A DNA stretch of 64,000 nucleotides from Stegostoma tigrinum (lineage: Eukaryota): positions 744,001 to 808,000 of the forward strand of contig NC_081392.1 in NCBI RefSeq assembly GCF_030684315.1, read 5' to 3'. Every line of letters starts with the position of its first letter. Position 1 is the stretch's first letter. Made by a program: the position numbers and the translations under genes. Positions 3,113 through 60,939 of this stretch are shown here, one piece after another. Under the pieces are notes generated by a model. It was not told the origin of the DNA. It was given only the letters and a program-made list of their open reading frames with translations, and made no database searches.

Positions 3113-4443
3113 AGTTATATGAGCGTCAGTGGTGGGTAAGTTATTGATGGGGATTCTAAGAGATGGGACCCACATGCAAGACTGATTAGGAATAGTCAAC
3201 ATGGCTTTGCAGATGGGAAACCATTTCTCACAAATTTAATTGATTTTTTTGCAGAGGTGACCAAGAAAATAGATGAAGGCAGAGTGGTAGCTGTTGTCTA
3301 CATAGACTTTGGCAAGGCTTTCCACAAAGTTCTACATGGTAGACTGGCTGGTAAGGTTAGATCCATGGAGAGCTACCCAATTGGATACAAAATTGACTCG
3401 CTGGTAGGAGACAGAGTGGTGGTAAAAGGTTGTTGTTCAGACTGGAGGCCTGTAATGAGCAGTTTGCCACAAGGATTGGTGCTGGGCCCACCGTTGTTCA
3501 TCATTTATAGGAATGATTTGGATGACAATACAAGAGGCATAATTAGTAAGTTTGTGGATGCCGCCAAAATTTGTGGTATAGTGGACAGTGAAGAAGGTTA
3601 TCTAAGAATACAGTGGGATTTTGATCACCTGAGCCAGTGGGCCAAGGAATGGCAGATGGAGTTTAATTCAGATAAATGTAATATGTTGCAGTTTGGTAAA
3701 ACTTACGCAGTTAATGATAGGGCTGTGTGGAGTGTTGTCAAACAGAGAGACCTTTGGCTACAAAAACATAGTTCCTTGAAGGTGGGGTCACAGGTACACA
3801 AAAATGGTGAAGAATGCATGTGGCACACTCATTGATCAGAGCATTGAGTACAAGAGTTGGGACATTATGTTATGGCTGTACAAGACATTGTTAAGGACAC
3901 ATTTGCAGTACTGAATATATTTCTGGTCAGCCTGCTATAGGAAGGACAGTATTAAACTGGAAAGGGTGCAAAAAGGATTTGCAAGGATGTTATCAAGGCT
4001 GAAAAGTTTGAGTTATAAGGAGAGGCTGGATAAGCTGGGACATTCTTCCCTGGAAGATAGGAGGCTAAACTTTGAAGAGATTTAGAAAATCTTGAGGAGC
4101 ATAGATAAGGTGAATAGCCAACATCTTTTCTGTGGTGTAAGGGAGTCTAAAACTACACAGTGAGAATTTAAGGTGAGAGGGGAAAGATTAAAAAGGGACC
4201 TGAGGGGTAAGTTTTTCACACAGAAGGTGGTGCATATATGCAACGAGCTGCCAGAGGAAGTGATAGAAATAGGTACAATTTTAACATTTAAAGAACATTT
4301 GGACAGTTATAGAGATAGGAAAGGTTTGGAGGCATATGTGTCAAATGCAGGCAAACAGGATAAGTTCAGTTTAGGAAATCTGGTTGACTTGGACCAAGAG
4401 GCCTGTGTCTGTGCTGTATATCTCTATGAATCTATGGCTCTAT
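3112..4443 (+). mobile_element. 5'-truncated CR1 LINE
   Basis: RT motifs VYIDFGKAFHKV, PQGLVLGP, KFVDA; (TCTATGA)n-type tail. Confidence 0.88.
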
Positions 4444-10777: not shown

Positions 10778-11030
10778 TCTACCAGGTTTATGGATAATGG
10801 GAACTGCAGATGCTGGAGAATCCAAGATAACAAAGTGAGGGCCTGGGTGAACACAGCAGGCCAAGCAGCATCTTAGGAGCACAAAAGCTGACGTTTCGGG
10901 CTTAGACCCTTCATCAGAAAACCTCAATGATGAAGGGTCTAGGCCCGATACGTCAGCTTTTGTGCTCCTAAGATGTTGCTTGGCCTGCTGTGTTCATTCA
11001 GCCCCACACTTTGTTATCTACCAGGTTTAT
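10778..11030. mobile_element. Penelope-derived fold-back insertion with 14-bp TSD and hammerhead motif
   Basis: Inverted arms centred near 10922. TCTACCAGGTTTAT duplicated at 10778-10791 and 11017-11030. Intact CTGATGA..GAAAC-GTC on the - strand at 10890-10917. Confidence 0.8.
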
Positions 11031-13019: not shown

Positions 13020-13047
13020 CCTTTTTGTATGAGATTAAATTACTGTG
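13020..13047 (-). other. 5' D-beta 12-bp-spacer RSS
   Basis: Nonamer CCTTTTTGT (13020-13028), 12-bp spacer, heptamer TACTGTG (13041-13047), as read on the + strand. Confidence 0.95.
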
Positions 13048-13060
13048 GGGACAGGGGGGT
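13048..13060 (+). CDS. TRBD: TCR beta diversity segment (D-beta), GGGACAGGGGGGT
   Basis: Near-identical to the conserved vertebrate D-beta1 core GGGACAGGGGGC. Open in all three frames (GTGG / GQGG / DRG). Flanked by a 12-RSS and a 23-RSS. Confidence 0.97.
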
Positions 13061-13099
13061 CACAGTGATATATTGTAATTCAGTCTCTGTACAAAAACC
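13061..13099 (+). other. 3' D-beta 23-bp-spacer RSS (perfect consensus)
   Basis: CACAGTG (13061-13067), 23-bp spacer, ACAAAAACC (13091-13099). Confidence 0.98.
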
Positions 13100-13905
13100 T
13101 CCCTTGTCTTTCGGGGTCATCAGAAAAGCAGAGACAAGGGCTGGAAAGCGCTGACATCCTGTGGCGATAATGAAACCAGCTGGTTCTTTTTCACCTTAAT
13201 ATGCACTTGATTTGCCTGTGAAGGACTTTTTTTTTAAAGGTTATAAGGTTCATTTTGTGCCATGTATGGAAATGCCGAACACTCTTCGCCCTCAAAACCT
13301 CTCCAGCGCCATGACCGATATTTACTTTCATTCCACATTTAAAATGGAAATCAGATAAGTCAACGCAAGTATATTTGAGTGATTTCTTGGCATAATTCGA
13401 TTCCGGCGTCACCCTATAATGCTCACGTTAGGAAAATATTTTATCGCGTTTAACCTGCTTTGTATATCAGTTTGATGAATTAATCTATTTCTGAGACGGA
13501 ATTGGTCATTTTGAGTTACAAAGGATTGCTCTTTCATCTTCCAGCACAATAAGGCGTATTTAAAGGATGGCTATTCCAGTTGGTTCATTACAAGAGGGAT
13601 GACTTGGCAGTACTCTGAACACAGTTTTATATCCCCTTCGCTAACCGTTAATTGCAATCATAAGAGTTAATATAGAGACTATTGTTTAAAATCTGATTCC
13701 CGGGGATCAGAGCTCAATCATTCCGGACAAATTGAAATCAATTGATGAGGATTGAACCATAAAGAATCATGAAGATCAACATGGAGTCGTGCAGTCTACA
13801 ATGAAATTCAAACAGTTATTTGCGGCATTACACGGATTGGATACAGATTACAGTGGAAAGAAGTGGCAAATCTGAGGCTTTTAAAGATGCTGTAGTGTCA
13901 CTGTG

Positions 13906-13953
13906 TGACCGATCCGATTTACTTTGGGCAAGGGACGAGACTAACAGTTTTGG
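13906..13953 (+). CDS. TRBJ: J-beta 1 (TDPIYFGQGTRLTVL)
   Basis: FGxGT motif. Heptamer CACTGTG at 13899-13905 with a degenerate nonamer. Phase-1 donor G|GTGAGT. Confidence 0.95.
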
Positions 13954-14121
13954 GTGAGTTCCTCTTATTTCTAGTGTATCTCTCAGGCGGTTGATGATTA
14001 GTTTAAAATCTGTCCACGATAGCGTTTGACTCTTGAATATTCTCTTCTAAACGACACAAATCTTCTCAATTGGAAAGAGGTATTTCTGGCGACTGTTCAT
14101 GATTTAGAATTGATCATTGTG

Positions 14122-14169
14122 CAGGAAGCATCGTTTATTTCGGCGAAGGAACAAAGTTAACAGTTTTGG
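14122..14169 (+). CDS. TRBJ: J-beta 2 (GSIVYFGEGTKLTVL)
   Basis: FGxGT motif. Heptamer CATTGTG at 14115-14121, nonamer TGTTCATGA at 12 bp. Donor G|GTAAG. Confidence 0.95.
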
Positions 14170-14687
14170 GTAAGGTTTCTGTGCCTCTGTTAACTAAACA
14201 TAAATCTATACAATTGCTTATGTGTCAGGCTTTTAAATATATGTCGACGACTAGTTGTTTAGACTAAACTTGTATTCTCTCGATTTAAAAGCATCCGTGG
14301 TTTCATATAACCTATGCGTTTAAGTTTTCGTAGAATTGTTAGCGAGAAACTATTTAGTCTAATCCAACTGAGTCAAGAACAATTGAACTTCGAGCCAGAT
14401 TTGAAGTGAATGTAAAAAAAAGTAGCGGGAGACATGAAAATCTCTTCCCAGAAACCTGTTGGGCCTATTTCAATATAGTACGTGATTCGAAGTATTGAGG
14501 GTTAGTGAAACCAAGGCTTGAGATACAAAGCGTCAATAATTTGAATGACTGATGAGGCAGCTTAGAAAGTTGAATGGCCGCTACATGGCCTACATTCCTT
14601 ACCGATCATTGATTTCGTTAATGTTCCAAAAATAAAACTAACGAGCCAGACGTGAGGAGGATTTTGCTTTCGGTTCATACCATTGTG

Positions 14688-14737
14688 TTCTGCTGGTGAG
14701 GCTTACTTCGGAAGAGGGACAAAATTGACCGTTTTAG
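14688..14737 (+). CDS. TRBJ: J-beta 3 (SAGEAYFGRGTKLTVL)
   Basis: FGxGT motif. Heptamer CATTGTG at 14681-14687, nonamer-like GGATTTTGC at 12-13 bp. Donor G|GTAAG. Confidence 0.95.
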
Positions 14738-15901
14738 GTAAGTGAATATATTCCTAATACTGGAAAGTGTTGGTTCACTTCTTGAACTCTTACTGCTGAT
14801 TAAGGGAATGAAATTATAGGAAGTCGGTGAAAACAGGGCATCAACAGAATGGTCAGTAATAATTCCAGCTGAGAATTCCAGTGAAAACTCCTTTCCAGAG
14901 AGTGCTGATAAAGTGTCACCTCCGGGAATGAGTTGAGGTGAGTAGCCCAGATGCAGTCATAGGAAAACACATGAAGGAAAAAGGAACAGAAACCTATTCT
15001 AAGATAATAAGGTGTAGAGCTGGATGAACACAGCAGGCCAAGCAGCATCAGAGGAACAGGAAAGCTGACGTTTCGGGTCTAGACCCTTCTTTAGAAATGT
15101 TTTCCAGCATCGGTAGTTCCTACTATCTCAGAAAACTGTTCTATGACATCGCCATTGTCTAACCGAGGTCAGGGGTTACTACCATTTGGAGACAATCTAT
15201 TGTAAAATTACTATTTGAATTCGATAGTGTTGTTAAGTTGTATCTGTACACTTTAAGGTGTCTATTGTCTAAGGAAACATTTCTCTTAGTCCAGAAAACT
15301 ACCGGAGCTAAAAGAGTTGCATTCCATCGAGAGGTTCCTAAGCTTGGTTTGGCTATCATTTTAAATATCGAACATTAAGGGATGTCCCGACTGATGTCTT
15401 TAAAATTCTGTAGGATTAGATTACATGTATAACAATAAGCTATTTTCTTTGCTTTGGCGAATACTGAATGATGCGTTAAACTTTAAAATTGGTATGGAAT
15501 CTTTCAAGAATGATATCATGCTTTTCTGATTAACGCGGAGTCTGCTGAAATTCTAGATGTGTAATCCCGAGAAAATTGTTAAAACAGGAGGGATTTAGTG
15601 ATAAGGCTGTTGTGAGTGAACTAGCCGAATCTGTAACAGATTGAATATATTGGCATTAAAGTTATGGAACTTTGTCCAAAATGGATAAATTACATCAGAT
15701 TTGAGATAAGCCGAATTACATGTTGGAGCAAAGTCGATTGACTGAATGTACCCGCTCCCTCTTCCTATAATGCCTTCGTCCTCATGATCCCATTCTCCTT
15801 TGGTGGCGTGTTCCTCTCCCCTTACTGGTTCACATGCAAGTTCCCCAGGAAAACTAATCGTAGGCACCTGAGATGTTTTTAAATAGGCATTAACCCCTGT
15901 G

Positions 15902-15949
15902 CTGCTGACAAGTACTATTTCGGAGCTGGAACTAAAGTGACTGTTTTAG
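15902..15949 (+). CDS. TRBJ: J-beta 4 (ADKYYFGAGTKVTVL)
   Basis: FGxGT motif. Heptamer CCCTGTG at 15895-15901, nonamer TGTTTTTAA at 12 bp. Donor G|GTAAG. Confidence 0.95.
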
Positions 15950-16161
15950 GTAAGTTCATATTTATAAGTATATTCCTAAAAAACAGTAGGCTAAATTAAA
16001 ATATCTGTGGATCTACCTTTATATGTATCTACCTGTCTGTCTTTCTATAATTCAGACACTCTGCCTGTTTGCGTAAGTATCGTTATCTATCTATCAGAAT
16101 ACACGTTTTAGTACCTCTGTTTAGAGACCACGGATTTCTTGTACTATAGTTTATCAAAGTG

Positions 16162-16212
16162 ATTCTAACAACCCTCTGCATTTTGGGGACGGGACGATTT
16201 TAACTGTTTTGG
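16162..16212 (+). CDS. TRBJ: J-beta 5 (SNNPLHFGDGTILTVL)
   Basis: FGxGT motif. Heptamer CAAAGTG at 16155-16161, nonamer ATTTCTTGT at 12 bp. Donor G|GTGAGT. Confidence 0.94.
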
Positions 16213-16532
16213 GTGAGTTCGACTTCTATTTTTGCATCAAAGTTAGAGTGGTGTGTTTTAAACAGAATTGAACGACTATTTACGAGTAAATAAGGGAAAA
16301 TTTTTCAATACTGTCAGGACTGTAATCTTAGACAAGAGACATGCAGATCCATAGGTCGGGGGACAGGTCTATTAAGAAAGATACTTGGAAACTTCCTGGT
16401 AAATTAATGAGCTTAGATCAAACCTGCTGTTACCTTTTGTTATCTACAACCCTTTACCAAAGATTTGGGATGTGGTGAAATTTTGCCCAGAGACTGTTGT
16501 GAACTGTTTTTGTGGTGTGATATGTTGGCGTG

Positions 16533-16590
16533 GGAGCAAGTAACAGTCAACCCTTGCATTTTGGACTTGGCACGAAGTTGATCGTTCTCG
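16533..16590 (+). CDS. TRBJ: J-beta 6 (GASNSQPLHFGLGTKLIVL)
   Basis: FGxGT motif, which explains ORF 16530..16760. Heptamer TGGCGTG at 16526-16532, nonamer TGTTTTTGT at 16505-16513. Donor G|GTAAG. Confidence 0.94.
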
Positions 16591-18031
16591 GTAAGTTATT
16601 GGTCAACAGCATCCCATATCAAATGCGCATCAATCGGTTTGCTCAATCGGCAGGACAGCTAGTTAGAAAAGCGATAAATGCGAGTTCAATTCCTGCTTCG
16701 GGTGAGGTTGCCAAAAAGAACTCTCTCTTAAAAAGAACATTTCTAATCACCCTGAATTAAATGTCATTGTATACCTCCGGAGCAAATGGGATTTGAACCG
16801 GATCACCTAGCTCAGAGGTGGGCGCATTACCACTGTGCTAAAACAGCCCTTTCCAAACTGTTTCTTCTCAACCTAACCCCTGATCGCAGCCGTGGAGGCT
16901 CCTGTTAAAACATTGCCTGTCGTTTCGCTCTAATCAGGGAGCAGGATATGGTGACTACCGCTTTAATCTTTTAGATAAGTATTGAAACTCTCGACTTATT
17001 CATTCTAATCAATTTAAAGATAGGGCAGAAACAATGAAATTTAGAAGGCTTTACATTTTCTTTAAATAGCAAATACGCCAACTAATTTAACATAAGGGAG
17101 AATTTGTATGGATATTGAAGGAAAACGAATAAGACATAAGCAGGCATTTCACATTTAAGACATGTTCACAGAATGCATAAGAATGAATTAAGCAGTGGTT
17201 CCTCCAGTTTCTCCCACAGCTCATCATTAAAATTAACATGTCGTTGATTGAAATATATTCTACGCCATATTCCTTACAACTTCATAGTTCAAAAATCCGT
17301 CTGAACAACATTGAATATAATGATTTAACCTCCAGAGCTCTCTAGGAAGAGAAGTCCAAAGATATGCCAACCTACGAGAGAAGGAATCAATCTTCATCTC
17401 CGTTTAAAATGGGTAGCCACTAATTCGGAATTATGCCTCAAGGGTTCTAGATTACCCATATGGAGAAACATCATCAGCATCGTCCTGTCAAGTCCCATTT
17501 AAAATTTCATAGATCTTAATAAAATCCCTTCCCATATTCTCAAATTCCAGCTATAGTACAATTTCTTTTCAGCGACTATGTATGCCACTGACTGGACCAT
17601 CCTGTGTTGACCATCCTGAAGTGACCTTGAACTGAGTAGCATCTTCTGGCCATTTCAGAGGAAGGTTATTGTCGAGCAAATTTCTGTTGATCTGTATACA
17701 TATCTATGCCAGACCAGATAAGGATGAGAGATTTCTTTCCATGAAGGATACTAGTGGCTCAAGCGGCTACTGACAAAACTAAGCAATGGTTGCATATTTA
17801 TCATTAGACTAGCTTATAATTTCAGGTTTTATTTAAATAAAGCTGCATGAGGATGATAAATTAGAGACATAAAGCAGTAGGAAAGACTCAAAGCCCAGGC
17901 TAACTCTACAGCACCAGAGGATAAAGAGTTATACGTTAGAATAACACAATATATAATTACTAAATAAGTTCATGAACTAACCTGTAAAAACAACAGAGTC
18001 AAGAGTTTTCATACAAACATGTAATGCTGTG

Positions 18032-18083
18032 TCAGGAATTTATGACTATACATTTGGTGTTGGTTCAAAACTTGTGGTGTGAG
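18032..18083 (+). pseudogene. TRBJ: J-beta 7, nonsense codon in last position (SGIYDYTFGVGSKLVV*)
   Basis: FGxG motif. 12-RSS: AGTTTTCAT, 12-bp spacer, TGCTGTG at 18025-18031. Intact donor G|GTAAG but TGA at 18080-18082. Confidence 0.88.
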
Positions 18084-20649
18084 GTAAGTGATATAGAGTC
18101 AAGTTGGCTCTTCACAGCGAAGTAGCATAAGAGAATATTGTCTTATTAAAATCCAAAGAACGTTGAAGGCTAAATGCACGGCCAAGTGCATAATATGTGA
18201 ACATAATCAAAGCCATATATTCATGCTCAGATTCCAACATTGTATGCTTCCAAATACTAAAATCAAAATTTGCTGAACCAAATTCAATTTTCAGCATTTT
18301 AACTGACATGAACTAACTGCCCTGAATGTTAGAAGCTGATTGTGATACCTTTGTTCTAAATGTTCCTACAATAATTTAATGTGATGCTAGTTGTGAGGCA
18401 GAAAGACAACTAGATCACAAAAATGTCTGGAGGTTTAGACTGAAACATTGCTGAAGGTTAAAAGCACACAAAATGGTGAAGGGTTTACAAAGTTATGAAA
18501 GGAAGTTAGACCTAACTTTCATAAATCACTGGATAGACCCCTGCTGAAATAATGTATCTAGTTGCAGATATCACGTAGAAAGATGTCAGAAGGTTGCATA
18601 GAAGATTCATTTAAATGCTTCCAAGGATGAGCAAATATATTTCAGTGTCCATACCAGAGAAATTGGGAATGTTATTCTTAGTGTTTAGATGAAGTTTAGA
18701 TTAAAGTTTCAAAAATAATGTAGACTTTGGTGCATAAAATAACGGGAGACAGTTTCCATCAGTAAAGGTATCTGTAGTTTAAGGTAATTTAGTGAAATTG
18801 TAAAGCATGGTTTTCCGACAGCACATTGTTGTGATCTGGAAACTTTTACATAAAAGGGACATGGAAGCAAATTGAATTGCAATATTCAAAAGAAAAATTG
18901 AATGAAAAAGATTGCTTCTAGCAAGCAAGAAAGCCACCAATTAATGGTTATATATTCACAAACATTAAAGAAATATTCGCAGCAGCATTTAGGAGGTTAT
19001 TTATAAACTAATATTGAATACATTCAGAACTGACTGAAGAGGAAGTGAAAATTCACTATGAATAGGCTTGAATGGGATTTGTCTAAAACTGAATCATAGG
19101 AACATATGATGTATAGCAGGACATTAACTCATTCAATCTGTTTTACCATTCAATAATATCATAGCCAATTTGTACCCTAAGTTCAAATATACTTGCCCCA
19201 ATACCTGAATAATATTTTTTGACGATAACAATTAGCCTGAGAATTAAACCTTTCAAAAGATATTTGAACATTTGAATTTTATCCTTGCATCATCCTTTGC
19301 CTATAGAAATGTTTCCCAAATTCACGCCTGAGAGCTCTGAACCCCAAAGACTAGATTATAATCCATGAGTGCGAAAGTGCCCAATCTGCAGAACTACTTC
19401 ATCTCTATCAAGTATGTCAGTCAGTTAATTATGAGCTCTTTAGTTTTATAAAGTCTAGTTATCAAAATGCTACTTAGAAAAATCCTTCTTTGTAAGGTAA
19501 CATTTGAAGTACAGATATAATTTAAAGAAGATAAGCAAAGGAAGTTTTTATTTTAACACTGGGACGCAAGTGCCTGGAAAAGGCCACCAAGGAAAGTGAC
19601 AGAAGCAGATGCATGAGCAAAGTTTAAAAGGCATTTACACAGACATATGAACAGGCAGGGAATGGAGGGATACAAACCATGTACAGGCAGATGGAGTTAG
19701 TTTAGACTAGTATCATGGCCAGCACAGATATGGTGCGCCAGAGGACCGGTTCCTGTGCTGTCCTGTTCTATGTGCTGTATTTCTAATCGATCAACTGCAG
19801 TCCCTTGAATGCAAATAAGCATTGTGATGACTGAGTAGGCAGAGTGAATTGTAATTAAATTAGCTACATAAAAAAGCACAATGAAAGGTTAAGAAATGGT
19901 AAATTGAAAGCAAAAGGGCAAAAAAATCGAAAAATAATGAAAAATGTAAACCGTTTAGAATTCATTTAATTAAAATTTCCAAAAGCAATTTACCATCATT
20001 AGTAATGAGATACAACAACAAGCAATGGATACATTTATGGCCTAGAGACATAGGCTAGGATTGCCTTAAGAAATATCACTTTAAAAATATTGATTTCAGT
20101 GCTGGTTTAATCAATATGATAGTGTATTGTAAAGTTTTGTGATATTGTGAATTGTAAAATTGTAGTATTTTGTAATGTTTTGTATTGTAATGGCCAGTTA
20201 CTCTCCAGCAGTCAAATCACAAATGAGAAAATTATAAATCTCAATGCAGTTCTTAAAAATATAGATGTATAGTACTATTCTTAGCTAAACAAACAAAAAC
20301 GCACCAGAAAATCGAAGTTAGGAATTTATAATAGGAATGCTGACTGCACATGATTTAGGCTTTAGCAGAGACATCAGGGCTGAGAGGAGAATATTTTAAC
20401 ATAGAATTATAGCAGCTAGGAGTGAAATCCAAAAGCATTGTTTCACAGAAATCACAATCGAATCTGAATGCCTTCTCTATAAAAGGTCAGTGAATACAAA
20501 AAGTACTTTGAACTTTTAAGATTGAGATTGATAGCATGTAGGTATCAAGGGATGTTGCAAATTGTGTTCTGGCTCTAGGAACTGAAAGGCATTCCAGCTC
20601 AACAACCTGTGAATTAATAGATTTTTTTCAGAGATGAGTGTTTAATGTG

Positions 20650-23277: not shown

Positions 23278-23622
23278 AATATGATGTTAAGGATCCTGTC
23301 ATCACTATCTATGGACCCTCTCCAGAAGAGCTTAAAGTCAAAAAGAAGGCAACTATCGTATGCCTAGTAACTGCCTTCTATCCTGACAATATCAAAATCC
23401 TCTGGTTTCTTGATAACGCTGAATTATTGCCCACTGATGTGCGTGTTCAGACTGACCACAATTCCATGTTAGAAGATGGAAACAAATCTTACAGCATCAG
23501 CAGTCGGATCAGATTGTCGGTTAAAGATTGGGTCCGGTACGAAAATTTTGAGTGCAAAGTGGATCACTATCAACAAGGAACAGAAAAGAAAACAAAAACA
23601 GCAGCTTTACCCATCAAAGCTG
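23278..23622 (+). CDS. TRBC: C-beta exon 1 (Ig C1 domain)
   Basis: EYDVKDPVITIYGPSPEEL..KKATIVCLVTAFYPDNIKILW..SYSISSRIRLSVKDW..FECKVDHY, the TCR C-beta pattern (ATLVC, FYPD, SSRLR). Acceptor CAG at 23275-23277, donor G|GTAGG, phase 1. Confidence 0.97.
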
Positions 23623-24275: not shown

Positions 24276-25783
24276 GTAAGTAACTATATCCTTCTAAATG
24301 CTTCTGGACATTATGCTTTATGAAGAATATAAGCATTCATGAGGGATTGGATCCAGGAATAGAACTGTTAGTTACAAAGTTAGTCTGGAGAATCTAGAGT
24401 TGTTCTCTTTGTAATGAAGGTGATTGAAGCAATATTTGATTAAGGTGTATGAAAGACTACAAAGATTTTGATAATTTGAACAAAGAAAATCTGCTCTTTT
24501 AACTGACGATGCATGGTTCAAGGAACATGATTTTAGGATTTTTAATGAGAAATGCAGGGAGAATGTGAGACGTAATATTTTTATGTAGGAATGATGACAA
24601 ACTTGAACTCCTTGCCAATGTGGGTGGTGAAAGCCAAGACAATCAATTATTTCCAAAGGAAATTGGATGAGCACTTGGAGCAATAAAGTGAGGAAATCAG
24701 AAAGCTTGATTTCTTCTACAGTTCAATGTGCCAAATGGCATTTTTTGTCCATAACATCTACGACTTTAAATAGTCGCAGTGCATAAATGGCATTTATAAA
24801 TGTGCTATTGTAACAGATTTTTCATGCAAATAGTTTTTTCAACATTGGCAACTGCTGTTTCCCATTAAAAAAAATTGACACCAAGTTAATAGAATACCCT
24901 ATCATGAGGGAAATATGATTAGGCTTTCAAGATAAGTTTGGCCCATCAATATCCTTCTTAACTAACTCATTGGAACCTATAAGGGAGAAAAAACGCTTCA
25001 GGGTGGATTGAGTGAGTTGAATGGAATTACATTAGTCTTCTAACTGTGAGATTAGTTTAAATTTTTCATAGGAATAATAGGTGAACTGCTCTATCAAGAG
25101 GAAAAAAATCCATTGTGCCTTCCAGGACCATTTTACATCCCAATATACTTTATTGCAAGAGAAGTAAATTTGAAATGCAGCCACTGCAGCAATATAGGGA
25201 GTATAATAACAAATTTTCACCCAGCAAACTCCCAAAAACAGTAATGACCAGATAATTTGTTTTTGGTGAATCTGGTTGAGAGGTGTATGTTGTTCCAGGA
25301 CCCTTTGCAGAATGTAATCATGCTACTGGATGCTTGACATTTGCTCCAAAGGAAAGTAGGTCAATGAGTCAATGCTTTTGCACAAAAGTGCAGTTTTCTC
25401 TCTCTGCTGACACTGAGAGTAGGCCTTAAGTGACCCTAAGGGGAAAATGCTTTACATTGAAAAAAGTTATCATGGTTGACACAAGCTCTTAATTCATACA
25501 TTTCTGAGTTCCAAATTCAAATATTTTCTCACATTTAGATGTAAACGTTAGTGTGATTCCTATAGTGAATAAAAATATTCAGAATGTACTATTATACATC
25601 ATTGGAGAATAATTGATACAGAGATGTAGGGTAACGTCTTGCATCAAAGGAGAATGTATTCTATTTTACAGATTAACTTTACATTGGGAGTCTGAAATAA
25701 AAATACGATTCACTTGCTAAAAGAAACATCTTATTTTATGAAAACAGGTATTTTAACAATGTTTATTACAAATATCTTCACAG

Positions 25784-25890
25784 AAGACAAAATCCACAGC
25801 ATGGATGCAGGAAAATTGACGTACCTGATATTGACTTGCAAAAGTGTCTTTTATGGAATATTCATCTCAATAATTGCTTGGAAAACTAAG
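25784..25890 (+). CDS. TRBC: C-beta exon 3 (transmembrane, CART motif)
   Basis: EDKIHSMDAGKLTYLILTCKSVFYGIFISIIAWKTK with Y..L..K...Y including the charged TM lysine. Acceptor CAG at 25781-25783, donor AAG|GTAAAA. Confidence 0.95.
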
Positions 25891-26127: not shown

Positions 26128-29100
26128 ATGATTTATGGTGGAAAGAGGGACTGATAGAAGATTTGCCAGAAACAAAAGAGACTCGCGGTTGGTGTGTTGC
26201 CTCCCAGGTGCCAGGGTCTGTGATGTCTCAAATCGTGTCTTTGGGGTCCTGAAGGGAGAGGGTAACCAGTCCCAAGTCGTGGTCCACATAGGCACCAACA
26301 ACATATGTAGAAAGAGGGATACGGATGTCAGACAGGATTTCAGGGAGGTAGGGTGGAAGCTGAGAGCTGGAACAGAGTGGTTATCTCTGGTTTGTTACCG
26401 TTGCCATGTGATAGCGAGGCAAAGAACAGGGAGAGATTTCAGCTGAACACGTGGCTGCAGGGATGGTGCAGGAGGGAGGGCTTCAGGTACATGGACAATT
26501 GGGGCTCATTCTGGGGAAGGTGGGACCTCTACAAACAGGACGGTCTCCACTTGAACCAGAGGGGTACTAATATCCTGGGTGCGAAATTTGCTAGTGCCAT
26601 TCGGGTGGATTTAAACTACCTCAGAAGGGGGATGGGAAACTGAGGTGTAGTTCTAGTACATAGGAGGATGAGCGTAGGGAGGACATAGACAGGACCTCAC
26701 TGTCACAGGACTGTGCTGGCAGATAGCAAGCTGGATTGAAGTGTGTCTACTTTAACACCAGGAGTATCCGGAATAAGGTAGGTGAGCTTGCAGGATGAAT
26801 AGGTACCTGGGGCTTCGATGTTGTGGCCATTTTGGAGACATGGATGCAGCAGGGTCAGGAATGGATGTTGTAAGTTCCAGGGTTTAGATCTTTCATTAAG
26901 GTCAGGGAAGGTGGTAAAAGAGGGGGAGGTGTGGCATTGTTAGTCAAGGACAGTATAACGGTGGCTGAAAGAACTTTTGATGAGGACTCGTCTACTGAGG
27001 TGGTGTGGGCTGAGGTCAGAAACAGGAGAGGAGAGGTCACACTGCTGGGAGTTTTTTATAGGCCTCTGCAAAGTTCCAGGGATGTGGAGGAGAGGATTGG
27101 CAAAACTATTCTGGGCAGGAGTGAAAGGAACAAGGTTGTCATTATGGGAAACTTTAACTTCCCTAACATTGACTGGAAATGCTAAAACTCTGGTACATCG
27201 GATGGATCAGTTTTTGTCCAATGTGTGCAGGAGGGTTTCCTGACTCAGTATGTTGAAGAGCCAACAAGAGGGGAGGCCACACTGGATCTGGTACTTGGTA
27301 ATGAGCCAGGCCAAGTGTTTGATTTAGTGGTAGGTGAGCACTTTGGAGAGAGTGACCATAATTCGGTTATGTTTACTTTAGCGATGGAAAGGGATAGGAA
27401 CATGCCAAAGGGCAAGAGTTATAGATGGGGGAAGGGCAATTATAATGCAGAGAATGGGTTAGCAAAATGCAGGGGACGGGGACAATCGAAATGTGGAGCT
27501 GGTTGAAGGAACAGATATTGCGTCTCCTTGATAGGTATGTCCCTGTCAGGCAGGGAGGAAGCAATAAGGTAAGGGAACCATGGTTTACGAAAGAAATTAT
27601 ATCCCTTGTTAATCAGAAAAGGGAGGCTTATGTGACAATGAGACGAGATGGTTCGGATGAGGCGATGGAGAGTTACAGATTAGCTAGGAAGGATTTAAAG
27701 AGAGAGTTAAGAAGAGCAAGGACGGGACATGAGCAGACATTAGCAGGTAGAATAAAGGAGAACCCTAAAGCTTTCTATAGGTATGTGAGGAATACGAGGA
27801 TGACTAGGGTAGGAATAGGGCCAGTCAAAGGCAGAAGTTGGAAGTTGTGTGTGGACCCTGTGGAGATCGGAGAGGTGCAAAATGATTATTTCTCATCTGT
27901 TTTCACTGAGGAACAGGAGAATATTGCAGAGGAGATGACTGAGTTACGGGCTACTAGAATTGAAAGGATTAAGGTTAGTAAGGAGGAGGTGTTATCAATT
28001 CTAGAAGGTGTGAAATTAGATAAATCCCCTGGGCCAGATGGGATTTTTCCGAGGTTTGTCTGGGAAGCTAGGGAGGAGATGGCGGAGACCTGGGCCTTGA
28101 TCTTTGAGTCCTCACTGTCGACAGGTTTAGTATCAGAGGACTGGAGGATTGCAAATGTTGTGCCCTTGTTCAAGAAAGGCAGTAGGGATCACCCAGGTAA
28201 TTATAGACCTGTGAGCCTTATGTCTGTTGTAGGAAAGGTTTTGGAAAGGATTATAAGAGATAGGATTTATAACCATCTCGCAAGCAACAATTTGATTGGA
28301 GAAGGTTAGCATGGATTCGTCAAGGGCAGTTCATGTCTCACAAACCTCATTGAGTTTTTTGAGGTGACCAAGCATGTCACTGAGGGAAGGGCAGTTGACG
28401 TGGTGTACATGGACTTCAGTAAAGCCTTTGATAAGGTTCCACATGGTAGGCTATTGGAGAAAATACAGAGGCACGGGACTGAGGGAGATTTAGCAGTTTG
28501 GATTAGAAACTGGCTTCCTGTAAGAAGGCAACAAGTGGTGGTTGATAGAAAATATTCAGCCTGGAGTCAGATTACTAGTGGTGTGCCTCAAGGATCTGTT
28601 TTGGAACTGCTGCTGTTTGTTATTTTTATAAAAGACTTGGACGCAGGCACAGGTGGATGGGTTAGTAAGTTTGCAGGTGACACTAAAGTCAGTGGAGTGG
28701 TGGACAGTGTGGAAGAATGTTGCAGGTTGCAGGGAGACTTGGATAAACTGCGGAATTGGGCTGAAAGGTGGCAAATGGAGTTCAATGCAGATAAATGTGA
28801 GGTGATTCACTTTGGGAGGAATAATAGGAAGGCAGAATACCAGGTCAATGGTAAGATTCCTGGTAATGTGGATGTGCAGAGGGATCTTGGTGTCCGTGTA
28901 CATAGATCCCTGAAAGTTGCCACCCAGCTTGATAGTGCTGTTAAGAAGGCTTATGGTGTGTTAGGTTTTATTGATAGAGGGATTGAGTTCTGGAGCCGTG
29001 ATATCATGCTGCAACTGTACAAAACGCTAGTGCGGCCTCATTTGGAGTATTGCATGCAGTTCTGGTTGCCCCATTACAGGAAGGATGTGGCAGCATTGGA

Positions 29101-29573
29101 AAAGGTGCAGAGGAGATTTTCCAGGATGTTACCTGGTCTGGAACGCAGGCCCTATGAGGAAAGGCTGAGGGACTTGGGTCTTTTCTCATTGGAGAGAAGG
29201 AGGCTAAGAGGGGATTTAATAGAGACATACAAGATCATCACAGGATTAGATAGAGTGGACAGTGAGAGTCTTTTTCCAAGGATGATGACTTCAGATTGTA
29301 CAAGGGGGCATAGCTGCAAATTGAGGGGTGATATATTTAAGACAGATGTCAGAGGCAGGTTCTTTACTCAGAGAGTGGCAAGGGTGTGGAATGCCCTGCC
29401 TGCCAATGCAGTTAACTCAGCCACATTAGGGGCATTTAAATAGTCGTTGGATAAGCATATGGATGATGACAGGATAGTGTAGGGGGAGGCGGTTAGATTA
29501 GTTCACAGGTCGGCGCCACATCGAGGGCTGAAGGGCCTGTTCTGCGTTGTATTGTTCTATGTTCTATGTTCTA
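26128..29573 (+). mobile_element. Long CR1 LINE (esterase-type ORF1 fragment plus EN-RT ORF2) in C-beta intron 3
   Basis: ORF1-like CCLPGARV..VVVHIGTN..DGLHLN (SGNH esterase). ORF2 endonuclease (GNFNFP, SDHN) and RT (YMDFSKAFDKV, PQGSVL, KFAGD). Tail (GTTCTAT)n. Only a few stops and frameshifts. Confidence 0.95.
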
Positions 29574-46734: not shown

Positions 46735-48775
46735 ATAGAACAATACAACACGGTACAGGTCCTTCAGCCCATGATGCTGTGCTGATCTTTTACCCTAATC
46801 CTAAAGTCTATCTAACCCCCACCCCTACCTTACACTATCATCCATATGCCTATCTAATAGCTGCTTAAATGCCCCTAATAAGGCCAACTCCACTACCCTC
46901 TCAGCAATGCATTCCACATTCTGACCACTCTTTGAGTAAAGAACCTACCTCTGACATCTCCCTAACATCTACATTCACTCACTTTAAAACTATGCCCCCT
47001 CGTAATAGTTACCTCTACTCTAGGAAAAAAGTCTCTGCCTGTCTTACTGTATCTATACCTCTGATCATTTTGTACACTTCTATCAAGTCACCTCTCATCC
47101 TTCATCGGATGAAAAGAAAAGCCCTAGCTCTCTCAACCTTTCCTTGTAAGGCCTTCCCTCCATTCCAGGCAACAACTTCCTCCAAATCATTTACAAAAAT
47201 CACAAGTAGAAGAGGACCCAGAACAGATCCTTGTTGTACACCATGCATAACTGAGCACCATGTTGAATATTTTCTGTCCACTACCACCCTTTGTCTTCTA
47301 AGGGTCTGCCAATTCTGAATCCAATCTGCCACATTTCGCCCTATCCCATGCTTCCGTATCTTCTGCATGAGCCTACCAGGGGAGCCTTATCAAATGCCTT
47401 GTTTAAATCCATGTATACCACATCTGCTGCTCTACCTTCATTCACATGTTTGGTCACCTCTTCAAAGAATTCAGTAAGGTTTGTGAGGCATGATCTACCT
47501 GTCACAAATCCATGCTGGCTATCTCAAATCAAACCGTGCCTTTCCAATTCATCATAAATCCTATCTCTCAGAGCACTTTCCAATAACTTGCCCACCACTG
47601 ACATAAGGCTAACTGGCCTTTAATTTCCAGTGTTATCTCTATTCCCTTTTTTGAACAAGTGAATGACGTTTGCCTCTCTCCAATCTTCCAGCATCATACC
47701 TGTGGACAGTGAGGATTAAAAGGTCATCACCAAAGGCCCTGCATTCTCTTCCCTCACATCCCATAGAATCCTTGGATAAATCCCATCAGTCCCAGGGTAC
47801 TTATCCATCTTCAAGTTCCTCAAAATTCCTAGTACTTCTTCCTTACTAACATTGACTTCCTCTAGCCTACCAGCCCGTTTCACACGGTCCTCCTCTACAA
47901 TTAGGTCCCTCTCAGTTGTGAATACCAGAGGAAAGTATTCATTAAGGACTTCTCCTATCTCCTTCAGCTCCATGCACAAATTCCCCTTACCATCCTGGAT
48001 TGGCCCTACCCTTTCTCCAGTCATTCTCTTATTCCTCACATATGTGTAAAAAGCAGGGCGGCATGGTGGCTCAGTGGTTAGCACTGCAGCTTCACAGCAG
48101 GTTCGATTCCAGTTGCGGGTGACTGCCTGTGTGGAGTCTACACATTCTCCCCGTGTCTGCATGGGTTTCCTCCAGGCGCTCTGGTTTCCTCCCACAGTCC
48201 AAAGATGTGCAGACTAGGTTGATTGACCATGCTAAATTGCCTGTGGTATTCAGGGATGTGTGGGTTATGGGGGGGATGGGTCTGGGTGGGATAATTCAAG
48301 GGGCAGTCTGGACTTGTTGGGCCAAAGGACCTGTTTCCATACTGTACGGAGTCTAATCTAATCTAAGCCTTGTACTTTTCCTTGATCCTATCTACCAAGG
48401 TTTTCTCATACCCCCCTTATAGCTCTCCTAAGCCCTTTCTTCAGCTCCTTCCTGGATAACTTGTAACCTTCTAGAGCCTTTTCCATTCCTTGTTTCCTTA
48501 CAAAAACATCCTTCCTCCTCTTAACCAGTCATTTGACCTCTCTTGAGAATGAAGGCTCCCTCACTTGACCACATCTTCCCTGCCTGCTATGGACAAACAT
48601 ATCGAGCACACACAGTATGCTTTCCTTCAACAATCTCCACATTTCAATAGTGCTCTTCCCTGACAGCACCTGTTCCCAATTTATGTTACCCAGCTCTTGT
48701 CTAACAGAATTGTAATTACCCTTCCCCCACTTATAAACCTTACCCTGTTGTATGTACTTATCATTTTCCATGACG
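46735..48775 (-). mobile_element. CR1 LINE with internal deletion, interrupted by an HE1-like SINE (48055-48365, +)
   Basis: RT/tether peptides (QQGSVLGPLLLVIFVNDL, AFYTYVRNKRMT). Deletion junction near 47172. Confidence 0.88.
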
Positions 48776-51699: not shown

Positions 51700-52895
51700 A
51701 GATCTCAATGTGAGGAGAACGCCCTTGACCGCGTCTCCCGCATTTCCCGCAACACATCCCTCACACCCCGCCCCCGCCACAACCGCCCGAAGAGGATCCC
51801 CCTCGTTCTCACGCACCACCCCATCAACCTCCGGATACAACGCATCATCCTCTGACACTTCCGCCATCTACAATCCGACCCCACCACCCAAGGCATTTTT
51901 CCATCCCCACCCCTGTCTGCTTTCCGGAGAGACCACTCTCTCCGTGACTCCCTTGTTCACTCCACACTGCCCTCCAACCCCACCACACCCGGCACCTTCC
52001 CCTGCAACCGCAGGAAATGCTACACTTGCCCCCACACCTCCTCCCTCACCCCTATCCCAGGCCCCAAGATGACTTTCCAAATTAAGCAGAGGTTCACCTG
52101 CACATCTGCCAATGCGGTATACTGCATCCACTGCACCCGGTGTGGGTTCCTCTACATTGGGGAAACCAAGCGGAGTCTTGGGGACCGCTTTGCAGAACAC
52201 CTCCGCTCAGTTCGCAACAAACAACTGCACCTCCCAGTCGCAAACCATTTCCACTCCCCCTCCCATTCTTTAGATGACATGTCCATCATGGGCCTCCTGC
52301 AGTCCCACAATGATGCCACCCGAAGGTTGCAGGAACAGCAACTCATATTCCGCTTGGGAACCCTGCAGCCCAATGGTATCAACGTGGACTTCACCAGCTT
52401 CAAAATCTCCCCTTCCCCCACCGCATCCCAAAACCAGCCCAGTTCGTCCCCTCCCCCAACTGCACCACACAACCAGCCCAGCTCTTCCCCTCCACCCACT
52501 GCATCCCAAAACCAATCCAACTTGTCTCTGCCTCCCTAACCTGTTCTTCCTCTCACCCATCCCTTCCTCCCACCCCAAGCCGCACCTCCATCTCCTACCT
52601 ACTAACCTCATCCCACCTCCTTGACCTGTCCGTCTTCCCTGGACTGACCTACCCCCTCCCTACCTCCTCACCTATACTCTCCTCTCCACCTATCTTCTCT
52701 TCTCTCCATCTTCGGTCCGCCTCCCCCTCTCTCCCTATTTATTCCAGAACCCTCACGCCATCCCACTCTCTGATGAAGGGTCTCGGCCCGAAACGTCAGC
52801 TTTTGTGCTCCTGAGATGCTGCTTGGCCTGCTGTGTTCATCCAGCCTCACATTTATTATCTTGGATTCTCCAGCATCTGCAGTTCCCATTATCAC
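51700..52895 (+). mobile_element. 5'-truncated Penelope-like element (GIY-YIG endonuclease end plus pLTR)
   Basis: ORF 52069..52539: FTCTSANAVYCIHCTRCGFLYIGETKRSLGDRFAEH..VANHF..QEQQLIFRLGTLQPNGIN. CpG-rich, which suggests a young copy. Ends in the repeat shared with the fold-back copies. Confidence 0.93.
52768..52800 (+). ncRNA. Minimal type-I hammerhead ribozyme motif in the Penelope pLTR
   Basis: CTGATGA (52770-52776), A, GGGT/GCCC stem II, GAAAC (52790-52794), GTC cleavage triplet. Helix III is reduced to palindromic ACGT. Confidence 0.75.
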
Positions 52896-54527: not shown

Positions 54528-54565
54528 GGGTTTTGATCGCGGGAGGTTTTTGTCGCGGCGCTGTG
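54528..54565 (-). other. 23-type RSS of the inverted V
   Basis: Minus strand: CACAGCG, 22-bp spacer, TCAAAACCC. Confidence 0.85.
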
Positions 54566-54874
54566 CTCCATCACTAGCTGCACAGTAGTAAACCGCCGAG
54601 TCTGACCCTCTCACTCTGTCCAATCTTAGCTCGGATTTCCTATCGTTCGCACTTCGGGTGATGGTAAACCCAGACTTAAACTCCTCTTCATAGTTCGCTT
54701 GGCTCCCTATAACCAGGTACCCGATGAGGGCAAGGCCCTCTCCGGGACGCTGCCGGTACCAGAGCATGGTAGTACGCGTGGTTTCATTCTGGTAACAATT
54801 CAGTTCGGCGTTTCCATCTTCCTTCACAACGAGAGTAAACGGCCACTGATGCACCACATCGCCGGTGGAAGCAC
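54566..54874 (-). CDS. TRBV: Inverted TCR V-beta, V exon
   Basis: GASTGDVVHQWP..AELNCYQNETTRTTMLWYRQRPGEGLALIGY..YEEEFKSGFTITR..SELRLDRVRGSDSAVYYCAASDG: V-domain Cys, WYRQ, DSAVYYCAAS. Acceptor TTACAG. Followed directly by an RSS. Confidence 0.96.
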
Positions 54875-55267
54875 CTGTAAATATTTTGGGGGGCATTAAT
54901 AAGTAAACGTGAGACCTGGTAAGCGCTAAAGCTGCGTCTGAAAATGTGTTATCGAAAATACTGGATGATTGAATTAACCCCATTCCGCTCTATGGCCCTA
55001 CATATCTACAAATGTTCTGCTGATTTTAAGTGCCAGCTTATGTTTTGACATTCGTTTTACGATTTGCTCCCACGACCCTTTCAGGCAGCGCATTTCAGAT
55101 CACAACAAAACCGTGCTTTAAATAAAATTCGCCTCCAGTTCATTGGCAAAAGATCTCAGTGACACGGTATATCCCCTGTATTTCATTTTTAAAGTGCAAA
55201 TTTAATGATATTCATGGACCGAGCGCACAATTAAACCTGAGACTTTCAATAAATCTTTTTTGCTTAC

Positions 55268-55329
55268 ATGGCAGCAGAAAGACTAGAGAGGGCGAGAGGC
55301 TCGAAACGCATGTTGAACTGACTGATCAT
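55268..55329 (-). CDS. TRBV: Leader exon of the inverted V-beta (phase anomaly, see findings)
   Basis: ATGs at 55329 and 55311, donor AT|GTAAGC. Hydrophobic LVFLLP lies just before the donor but in a different frame from the ATGs. Confidence 0.7.
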
Positions 55330-55359
55330 TTAGTCAACTATGCGCAGCTATTCCTGAGA

Positions 55360-55406
55360 CCGGAGGTGACGTTAGAGTGACGTTTAAACGGCCGGAACGA
55401 GGAAGC
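55360..55406 (-). promoter_or_regulatory. V-beta promoter: tandem CRE/decamer-like motifs plus Ets sites
   Basis: GGTGACGTTA (55365-55374) and AGTGACGTTT (55377-55386) resemble the V-beta decamer AGTGAYRTCA. CCGGAA and AGGAAG are adjacent. The CRE-like motifs lie about 35-60 bp upstream of the leader ATG. Confidence 0.6.
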
Positions 55407-55407
55407 G

Positions 55408-55623
55408 AGATAACAAAGTGTGGGGCTGAATGAACACAGCAGGCCAAGTAGCACCTTAGGACCACAAAAGCTGACGTTTCGGGCCTAGACCCTTTTCTGA
55501 TGAAGGGTCTAGGCCCGAAACGTCAGCCTTTGTGCGCCTGAGATGCTGCTGGGCCTGCTGTGTTCATCCAGCTCCACACTTTGTTATCTTGGATTCTCCA
55601 GCATCTGCAGTTCCCATTATCTC
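55408..55623. mobile_element. Penelope-derived fold-back insertion immediately upstream of the V promoter
   Basis: Inverted arms. Intact + strand hammerhead core at 55497-55524. No clear TSD. Confidence 0.8.
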
Positions 55624-57049
55624 CGCTCCTTCCAGGTGTTAGGCTGGTAAACCTTAAGTGATCTGCTTGCAACGCAGTAACATCCTTTCGTAAGCAAGGT
55701 ATTGTACGCAGTACTCCAGTCTTACTAATATCATGTATAAATGAAATATAACCTTCCCAGTCTTGCATTGAATTATCCTCACAATAAACTATAACATTTT
55801 GTAGTCAAATAGAAGAGTTGACGTTTCCAGGCTGGTGACTCTGGTGAGCTTTGATGAAGAGTCAGGAGATTCGAGATATGGGTGCTTCCTTCTCCGCACA
55901 GATGCTGCCAGACTTACTGAGTTTTGCCAGAAATTTCTGTTTTGGTTTCGGATCTTCAGCATCCGCAGTTCTTCGCTTAGTGGCAAATTATGGTACACCT
56001 TTGCAGCAAATGGGATTTGAACCGGCACTTTATTGCCCAGAGTAAACAATCGTTTGTATACTGTTAGGGCTAAGAATTTCGGAAGTGGAATCTGCAAACA
56101 TTTCTTGACACAGACGATTTAAGAAATTTGAAAGTCCCAACAACAGACCAACGATGCTGATAACTTGGACATTTCAAGGCGGAGATCGAAAAAAATGCAT
56201 TCGCTTGTCTGCTGAGGGATGTGGTGTGGTGGGGGTTAGATACAGATCAATTATAATCGAATTGATTTATGCGGCAAGTTGAGAAGCTGTACGACTTCGT
56301 CCCTTCCTGTGTTTGTGTTGAAACATTTTTGAATCATTCATGGTTTCTTGGTACTACCGCGCCTTCTGCGCCTTACATAGAGGAGTCTAAGAGTCAATTT
56401 CCTGTGCCCTTTGAAAATCGGCTTCAGCTGCTCACTGAATTAATTCCACACTCAGCACCCAAGGGTTGATGTTCCATCCTATTCGCAAGGGTTTTCTATT
56501 CATTCATCCGTCTTCTAACTTTCAATTACCTTTACATCGGTTACTCGGCTCAGTCTAGTGCCTGTCACGCTGAATTCCACATTCATATCGATCCTCGAAT
56601 TAAAAACATTCGCCAGAATTTCCAGTTACACTCTTACCCATTCAAACCTAACGAGAGTTGTTATTTCACTCGCGTCCTCCCTTACAGTCACTCACTAACT
56701 TTCTAACGCCGCTCTTTTAAAACCGTATTAGCTTGCAAGAAGGGAAACATCGGAGGCGCCCTTTAGTTTTATCTGGAACTGCTGCTTTCTGCCGCATTTT
56801 TGATGAAATGCTCCATCTCTGAGTTATTGAGCACGTTTAATGCTAATAAACTGGGTACTTACTTATCACGAAGAACTATTCCAAATTTTGTGAGGCAAGT
56901 TATGTTTCCGACTAATAATGTTTCAGAAGATTAGAAAGAATATTAATTTCTACCAATTATCGTAAAGTCTTTAAAATCAACTGTAATATAAAGTAACTAC
57001 AATTCTGCTACACAGCTGACAAATTGGGAACAACCTTCCTCTCACTTCA

Positions 57050-59250: not shown

Positions 59251-60939
59251 TGATCACTATTCCCTTGATACCTGGATGTAAGAATTTGTTCATTTATCTA
59301 CATCTGCACTTAAGCCTCAATTAATAATCAGTCCCCAGTCCTGAACTGTCTTTTTACAACCTTCCTCTGTCCTCCTTCAGTGCCAATGGTCTTTACACCA
59401 TTTATTTCCTTATCTTCCCCAGTAACGCAATGGGCCTCTTTACTGCCCACAAACATTTGCTAAGGAATGCAATTAACTTTTTTACACTAATTTGTTCTTT
59501 GCATTTTTAATTTTACAATTACCTAAGATGTTTTGAATACATTAGGATGAGATGTTTCCTTCTACTTTTTACTAAATAAAAAACTTGGGACTGTGGTTAA
59601 TCTGGGCTTTCAGAAATGTCCCTTATTAAAGTGTTTTTTTTTATGTTTAGTACTGCCTTAATGAACTTCCCCTTCTTCATATAGAAAATTTTATCTTAAC
59701 CATTATCACCATATAGAGACTACAAGTCTGTCTATGAACATCTATCCTATGTAGCTGTCAACCTCTTTCAGCTGTCTTTTGTCACCTAAAACCCCAAAAC
59801 GGCCATTTAGTCAACTGCAGTCGTGGACCACTGCAACAATATTGATGGCTGTTGAGTAAAATATAAACTGTAACTCCTTCACTGGGTACATTCCGTACCA
59901 GTACATGTTAGGTGTACTAGTTCCCATCACGACGCACTTCAAGCTCACTCTCTCTCCCCAGGCGATTTGAAGACAGTAGTAGGAGTCTGGTGGATAATCT
60001 GTGTGTTCACATCTGGGGAAAATGTGGAGATACCAAATTCAAGAAATTGGAACATGGTGTACAGTGGGGGGAGGCCTGAAACGTCAGCTTTTGTGCTCCT
60101 AAGGTGCTGCTTGGCCTGCTGTGTTCATCCAGCTCCACACTTTGTTACCCTATAAACAAATTTATCTATATGTCCTGCCATCTTTAAAGATTTATGGAAC
60201 GCAACAGTGATCCCTCTGATCCTTTGTACTTCCTGCGATCCTATCATTCAAAGAGTGCACACTTGCCTCAATTGTCCTCACAACATACATGACTTCACAC
60301 TTCAGAGGATTAAATTCCATTTGCCACTGTTCATCTCATTTGATCAGCCATGTTTCCGTGACAGCAATGATATCACATCTTCATGCTTAATTAAAATAGT
60401 CAACCCAACTTTCTCACAAAGTTCCTTGTATAAAATAATTGACATTCAGGCTTGCCATTGCTCACTTGTGCTTTAACTTGACTATATTCACATTGCCTTT
60501 CAGAATGACTAACCTCTTCTTCTCTACTTGTTTGTGCATCATGCCTGCTGTACCTCCACTCATCTCTCTGCCAAGTTGGTTTAAACTTCCACCAACCACA
60601 TGAGCAAATGTCCTTGCAAGGATGTTTGTCCCAATTCAGTTCAGGTGAATCCATCAGATATGTAGAGTTCCTGCCTTCCCCAGAAATGGATCCAATAATC
60701 CAGGAAATGAAATCCCTCCCTTCTACTCAAACTCCTCAGCCACTCTTCATCTGTTCAACCATTCTATTCCTCTGCTGGCAAGCACGTGGCATTGAGAGTA
60801 GTGCACAAACTTTTGAGATGCTGCCTTTCAATCTGCTATCCAGCTCACTAACATCTTGTTTCAGGAATTCATCCATCTTTCAAATTCTCATTGATCCCGG
60901 TGTGAACTATTATTTCTGACTCAAAACAAAGTTGCTGGA

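Follow-up and report, generated by a model that had tools for sequence, protein, structure and literature searches.

The window analysed here is the whole stretch of 64,000 nucleotides from positions 744,001 to 808,000 of contig NC_081392.1 in the Stegostoma tigrinum assembly GCF_030684315.1, and it contains one complete TCR-beta D-J-C cluster on its + strand, made up of a single D, seven J and a TRBC (Table 1). A scan for recombination signals (RSS) placed the D, GGGACAGGGGGGT, at 13048-13060 (+), preceded by a 12-RSS and followed by a perfect 23-RSS. The J segments, spread over 13.9-18.1 kb, are of the J-beta type FGxGTxLTVLG and only one of the seven, the last, has an in-frame stop; this seventh J (18053-18090, + strand, FGVGSKLVV*G) was classed as a pseudo-J because the stop lies just 5' of the splice donor. 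Exon 1 of TRBC is 49% identical to the TRBC-like protein scyTo_0004486 of Scyliorhinus torazame and the transmembrane exon is far better conserved; on such sequence comparisons the C-beta isotypes of sharks seem to be very divergent. When exon 1 was searched against the PDB the matches were swamped by multi-domain antibodies. Open reading frames of the LINE reverse-transcriptase type were found at 3257-3835 (+), 26135-29443 (+) and 47716-48195 (-), the largest block (26.1-29.4 kb) lying in the interval from TRBC to the inverted V described below, directly 3' of TRBC. A tRNA-like match at 2455-2526 on the + strand (Rfam RF00005, 30.5 bits, barely above threshold) is probably the head of a SINE.

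Table 1. Features of the beta-chain region in the Stegostoma tigrinum window (positions within the window) and, for comparison, in the published map of Chiloscyllium punctatum (PMC10322711)
Feature	Source	Position	Strand	Remarks
TRBD with both signals	window	13020..13099	+	nonamer CCTTTTTGT, 12-nt spacer, heptamer TACTGTG, D, heptamer CACAGTG, 23-nt spacer, nonamer ACAAAAACC
Seven J-beta	window	13880..18090	+	FGxG motif starts 13923, 14139, 14707, 15919, 16182, 16560, 18053
TRBC exon 1	window	23278..23622	+	Pfam C1-set domain, E = 4.9e-18
TRBC transmembrane exon	window	about 25783..25889	+	KLTYLILTCKSVFYGIFISIIAWKTK; matches Scyliorhinus torazame TRBC-like protein
Altered RSS of V	window	54528..54565	-	heptamer CACAGCG, two nonamer-like motifs
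V exon	window	54566..54874	-	stop-free, 309 nt, 102 codons, ends YYCAASDG
Leader intron	window	54875..55267	-	393 nt
Leader exon (L-PART1)	window	55268..55311	-	44 nt, ATG 55311, donor AT/GTAAGC
CRE half-site pair	window	55366..55384	-	GTGACGTT twice on + strand, upstream of V leader
Truncated TRBV30-like V remnant	window	59814..60031	-	FR1 to CDR2 only, frameshifted
TRBV01-11 (15 genes)	C. punctatum	5,258,549-5,347,664	+	
TRBC_1, J01-07, TRBD1	C. punctatum	5,381,857-5,397,162	-	
TRBV12-14	C. punctatum	5,436,971-5,458,238	-	
TRBV15-16	C. punctatum	5,465,330-5,489,593	+	
TRBD2, J08-14, TRBC_2	C. punctatum	5,498,080-5,514,074	+	
TRBV17 to TRBV22_5 (15 genes)	C. punctatum	5,560,621-5,705,714	-	

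Beyond this cluster a V exon was found on the - strand, 3' of TRBC and in the opposite transcriptional orientation, so that it faces the D-J-C cluster. The exon has kept C23, W41 and YYC (Cys104), matches the Pfam V-set (E = 6.4e-11) and is translated as (G)ASTG DVVHQWPFTLV...LNC...MLWYRQ...DSAVYYCAASDG; its acceptor AG is at 54876-54875, a boundary that is confirmed by a spliced contig of another shark. A preliminary description of this DNA had reported such a stop-free V exon on the - strand, downstream of C-beta and facing the D-J-C cluster, and both the Pfam match and the coordinates agree with it. The distances that it gave are also correct; as measured here, the V heptamer is 28.7 kb past the transmembrane exon and 41.5 kb from D. 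The signal joint that it predicted, TACTGTG/CACAGCG with a new GTGCAC (ApaLI) site, follows from the letters. The V was typed as beta from its position next to D-J-C-beta and from its nearest proteins, which are fish V regions and a V of the bamboo shark Chiloscyllium punctatum. Four fish V regions were found, ending SDSAVYYCAAS and in one case joined to a J-beta-like FGNGTKLTVL, and at the protein level the V is 83% identical to the C. punctatum gene model P0005. Contigs of the organism's own DNA reads indicated that the V is single-copy in its genome at an identity of at least 85%. Structural searches with the whole exon were again swamped by multi-domain antibodies in the PDB and gave generic V-set clusters only in the ESM Atlas.

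The sequence GTGACGTT occurs only twice on the + strand of the window, at 55366 and 55377, both of them 45-70 nt 5' of the V start codon (ATG, 55311). As both occurrences sit just upstream of the V ATG, a CRE-type promoter for this V is plausible. Such a promoter had been claimed outright; the pair of CRE half-sites upstream of the ATG is indeed there, while the motif is antisense to V and the promoter itself is to be regarded as plausible only. A palindromic and very highly repeated element at 55400-55640 abuts the V promoter, ~20 nt upstream of the CRE-like pair, and related copies occur near 10850-10990, 52800-52835, 60080-60150 and 61800. Its summed contig depth in the DNA runs of the organism itself is ~10 million, and each arm of the palindrome holds CACAGCA-22-ACAAAAGCT, which mimics a 23-RSS. 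A search of Rfam at the gathering threshold gave nothing at this repeat, the sole match being the tRNA-like one at 2455-2526.

The V had been described as a lone one, which it is not. A pattern scan revealed another V element 5 kb further on, also on the - strand (60031-59814). It consists of an acceptor, FR1 VNTQIIHQTPTTVFKSPGER and, after a GA run near 59950 in which the frame shifts by +2, VSLKCVVMGTSTPNMYWY...ELQFIFYS and a stop; neither FR3 nor an RSS was found in this remnant. Searched against all PDB chains, the remnant had its best matches (E = 5e-7 to 7e-7) in 5xov_J and 3hg1_E (the MEL5 TCR beta); among unrelated TCR chains the next was 3tf7_C at 1e-3. The MEL5 TCR (3hg1) uses TRBV30 (PMC5887915), and the remnant and the TRBV30 chains have GTS.PN.YWY...LQ..FYS in common. 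The likeness of the main V to TRBV30 is weaker: its FR1 reads VVHQWPFTLV against TIHQWPATLV in TRBV30 (shared HQWP.TLV), with E = 0.02, a score only slightly better than that of a chain that is not TRBV30. With the remnant and four TRBV proteins of fish as queries, tblastn detected no V in the window other than these two. Scans for RSS, J motifs and Ig patterns and a tblastn search with the C and V of the window itself found no D, J or C on the - strand within the window, and joining of the V by deletion inside the window is therefore ruled out.

The leader of the V does not connect with the V reading frame. With 44 nt the leader exon ends in phase 2 and the V exon requires phase 1, that is, one nt from exon 1. 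The two upstream ATGs, at 55329 and 55311, are in one frame, which ends in TAA at the donor, and neither is in frame with the V exon; the reading frame of V, followed upstream, contains a stop and has no ATG 5' of the donor. When splice phases were counted, no other AG or GT restored phase 1 save a poor GTCTTT donor with a leader of 9 codons. In C. punctatum the leader length is 1 mod 3 in 26 of the 26 TRBV with an annotated intron (PMC10322711). The leader claimed earlier for this V thus fails on its frame, the relatives having phase-1 leaders. Contigs X3 and X4 from the organism's own DNA show no difference from the window over 55152-55335 and so, as far as these data show, the 44-nt leader is not a slip of the assembly.

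A pointer to how the frame may have been lost comes from a contig of another shark (X2, 338 nt), which covers exactly 54874-54566 at 90.6% identity and has 29 nt more on its 5' side. This contig was taken to be spliced because the 29 extra nt correspond to leader-exon rather than intron sequence and are joined straight to 54874. Set against the leader of the window the 29 nt agree at 11 of 13 positions upstream of a 2-nt gap, and at 8 of 15 ungapped, in a comparison that involves one contig from another species, possibly a paralogue, with the ATG outside the part covered. With 2 extra nt, giving a leader of 46 nt, the ATG frame of the window would read MRFEPL.LSIAFLLPC-ASTG into the V exon. 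Between the window V and the V of this contig there are 12 synonymous and 14 non-synonymous changes; the latter are fewer than neutral drift would give, which suggests a V family under constraint. Another contig, from a third organism (X1, 887 nt), agrees with the V at ~96% identity as far as 54570, so that the last 4 nt of the coding sequence are outside the match, and its other 793 nt fit neither the RSS nor the flank. Such a structure would be expected of a V-D-J-C transcript, and our guess is that X1 and X2 are both RNA.

The recombination signal has also been altered. A heptamer, CACAGCG, lies at 54565-54559, directly after the coding end of V, and agrees with the consensus at 6 of 7 positions. 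The consensus nonamer ACAAAAACC (9/9) follows at 54553-54545, only 5 nt past the heptamer, and a nonamer-like TCAAAACCC (7/9) at 54536-54528, 22 nt past it. The 32 nt past the heptamer, 54558-54527, consist of two 16-nt tandem units, CCGCGACAAAAACCTC and CCGCGATCAAAACCCC, which match at 13 of 16 positions and each contain one of the nonamer-like motifs; among adjacent 17-mer pairs across the window none reaches 13 matches. In the C. punctatum model P0005 the germline signal is translated along with the V, as CAASDG-AQR-LIIAHRH-DKN-FQ, equivalent to the heptamer CACAGCG, 23 nt and ACAAAAAC, a spacer length that was inferred from the protein model and not from DNA. Where P0005 reads AQR-LIIAHRH-DKN the window V reads AQR-R-DKN, and this is why its ACAAAAACC comes only 5 nt past the heptamer. 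Of the RSS described previously the heptamer therefore stands; the nonamer assigned to it, TCAAAACCC at 22 nt, is a diverged 7/9 copy within the 16-nt duplication, and the consensus nonamer is at 5 nt. We infer that the signal with the 22-nt spacing is not the ancestral RSS. The duplication may nevertheless have re-created a nonamer at a working distance once the spacer had collapsed, and the 22-nt-spaced signal could still act, though weakly, so that some recombination of this V may occur. V-beta RSSs of poor quality have been reported (PMC7478721).

For C. punctatum a map of TRB with strands is available in the supplementary TRB table of Giorgetti et al., Nature 2023 (PMC10322711), the V having been obtained from cDNA carrying J and C. 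It includes two D-J-C clusters in opposite orientations, and each outer V cluster is on the same strand as the far D-J-C; 30 of the 35 expressed TRBV are located 3' of a TRBC and inverted (PMC10322711). The D-J-C that has the orientation of the inverted V itself is ~163 kb away (PMC10322711). The words 'inversion' and 'orientation' are absent from the main text of that paper, and in the running text of the literature searched no description of the shark TRB layout was found, its place being the supplementary table (PMC10322711). The window follows the same order of D, seven J, C and then V on the opposite strand, and corresponds to the D2-J-C2 half of the map. There are differences in detail: the first inverted V is 46.5 kb past TRBC_2 in C. 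punctatum and about 29-31 kb past TRBC in the window, and the window V departs from its bamboo-shark counterpart in the 44-nt leader and the collapsed RSS spacer. P0005 fuses two tandem V, one being the 83% identical homologue of the window V, whereas the next V of the window, the TRBV30-like remnant, is unlike the other V of the fused model. A second D-J-C cluster that could serve the V by deletion, which the preliminary description had named as a finding that would refute its own reading, is present in the C. punctatum map, with none inside the window.

Taken with the map, it is likely that the V is the C-proximal member of an inverted group 3' of D-J-C-beta, in a locus that is probably bamboo-shark-like, and that the copy in the window is probably a recent pseudogene. 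By analogy with C. punctatum the locus of S. tigrinum would comprise two opposite D-J-C clusters, each followed by a V cluster that is inverted to it and on the same strand as the far D-J-C. Two routes would then be available to RAG: the V could be inverted onto the neighbouring D (13048), the signal joint being kept on the chromosome, or it could be joined by deletion to a D-J-C cluster that would lie on the - strand, upstream of the window. Both routes obey the 12/23 rule, and deletion to the far cluster is a rival to inversion because C. punctatum has two opposite D-J-C clusters. In the window copy a loss of 2 nt from the leader exon would have cut the ATG off from the V frame and the ancestral nonamer would have come to lie 5 nt past the heptamer. 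The V exon has stayed open, and in related sharks its homologues are spliced and, it appears, rearranged. It is on account of these two lesions, in leader and RSS, that we rate a recent pseudogene as rather probable for this copy, and the leader frameshift and the altered RSS make its use doubtful.

It could be argued that the V is instead a working member of the inverted cluster and that what sets its leader and RSS apart is tolerated, is a polymorphism or is peculiar to the family, for example with the nonamer at 22 nt as a real signal or with a non-standard start or splice. The V exon is, after all, intact and conserved (83% protein identity to C. punctatum), the CRE-like pair and the splice sites have been kept, the X1 homologue looks rearranged, and a heptamer, 22 nt and a 7/9 nonamer are in the range of the weak natural V-beta signals (PMC7478721). 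This reading is nonetheless unlikely, as there is no in-frame ATG 5' of the donor, phase 1 can be had only through the poor GTCTTT donor and its 9-codon leader, and all of the annotated bamboo-shark TRBV leaders are phase 1 (PMC10322711).

Much less probable is a single functional inverted V-beta that, like human TRBV30 and mouse Trbv31, joins only by inversion to the D-J-C of the window. Its orientation, position and open V exon would suit this, as would the lack of - strand D, J and C within the window and the FR1 HQWP.TLV in common with a TRBV30 chain. However, that FR1 match is weak (E = 0.02) and hardly better than the match to a non-TRBV30 chain, a second - strand V remnant is found 5 kb on, the leader frame does not run into that of V, the consensus nonamer is at 5 nt, and in the bamboo shark there are inverted clusters of 15 genes and an opposite D-J-C cluster (PMC10322711). 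That the inverted orientation is an assembly error, whether a local inversion or a false join, is scarcely credible given that an independent assembly of another shark has the same order and strands of D, seven J, C and inverted V (PMC10322711), that short read contigs confirm the local letters and that two V elements are on the - strand.

The layout, as distinct from the state of this copy, is real and is an ordinary case of a known arrangement, already published for shark, bichir and sturgeon (PMC10322711). Inverted V-beta genes behind C-beta have been recorded in a variety of other vertebrates. Human TRBV30 and mouse Trbv31 (V-beta 14) resemble the window V in being 3' of TRBC and in the opposite orientation. 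According to PMC10464911, the 3' inverted V of mammals is single and functional and is inverted relative to every D-J-C cluster, for which reason it must join by inversion. The shark locus differs: it has several V elements, of which the copy in the window is probably disabled, and it probably includes an opposite D-J-C cluster. An inverted TRBV 3' of TRBC is found in most amniotes, with five in the tuatara, and the inverted genes form a clade of their own; amphibians and salmonids are also mentioned as having inverted TRBV (PMC11754216). In the newt there are three clusters of inverted V; these V are expressed, and their rearrangement is assumed to proceed by inversion (PMC12698447). In the bichir one to three + strand V are found 20-33 kb behind each of the - strand TRBC2, TRBC4 and TRBC5, and in the sturgeon a large + strand V cluster is behind the - strand TRBC1 (PMC10322711). 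The bichir and sturgeon rows, which PMC10322711 gives without comment, show that inverted V behind C-beta are widespread in early-branching fishes.

Tuatara, newt, axolotl, Chinese alligator, bichir and sturgeon resemble the shark in having groups of inverted V 3' of TRBC (PMC11754216; PMC12698447; PMC10322711). In those loci, however, all of the D-J-C units have one orientation, whereas in the shark map there are two. Pike and salmonids are like the bamboo shark in having two opposite V-D-J-C loci on one chromosome, but their V are between the clusters, head to head, whereas most of the bamboo-shark V are outside, behind each C (PMC10464911 for pike and salmonids).

Recent papers treat the inverted V-beta behind C-beta as an amniote feature, hinted at also in amphibians and salmonids (PMC11754216). 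A shark with a TRBV30-like sequence behind C-beta supports an origin at the base of the jawed vertebrates, and it raises the question of whether such a V is used via inversion to the near cluster or via deletion to the far, opposite one. The gain is modest, since the bamboo-shark layout was already in a supplementary table (PMC10322711) and the window copy is probably dead. We would suggest, tentatively, that the TRBV30 lineage, together with its location behind C-beta, may go back to the common ancestor of sharks and mammals, in which case the single inverted TRBV30 of the mammals might be the last relic of the outer V cluster of two interleaved, opposite translocons that sharks would still have. 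The presence of a TRBV30-like remnant beside the inverted V would fit such an old lineage.
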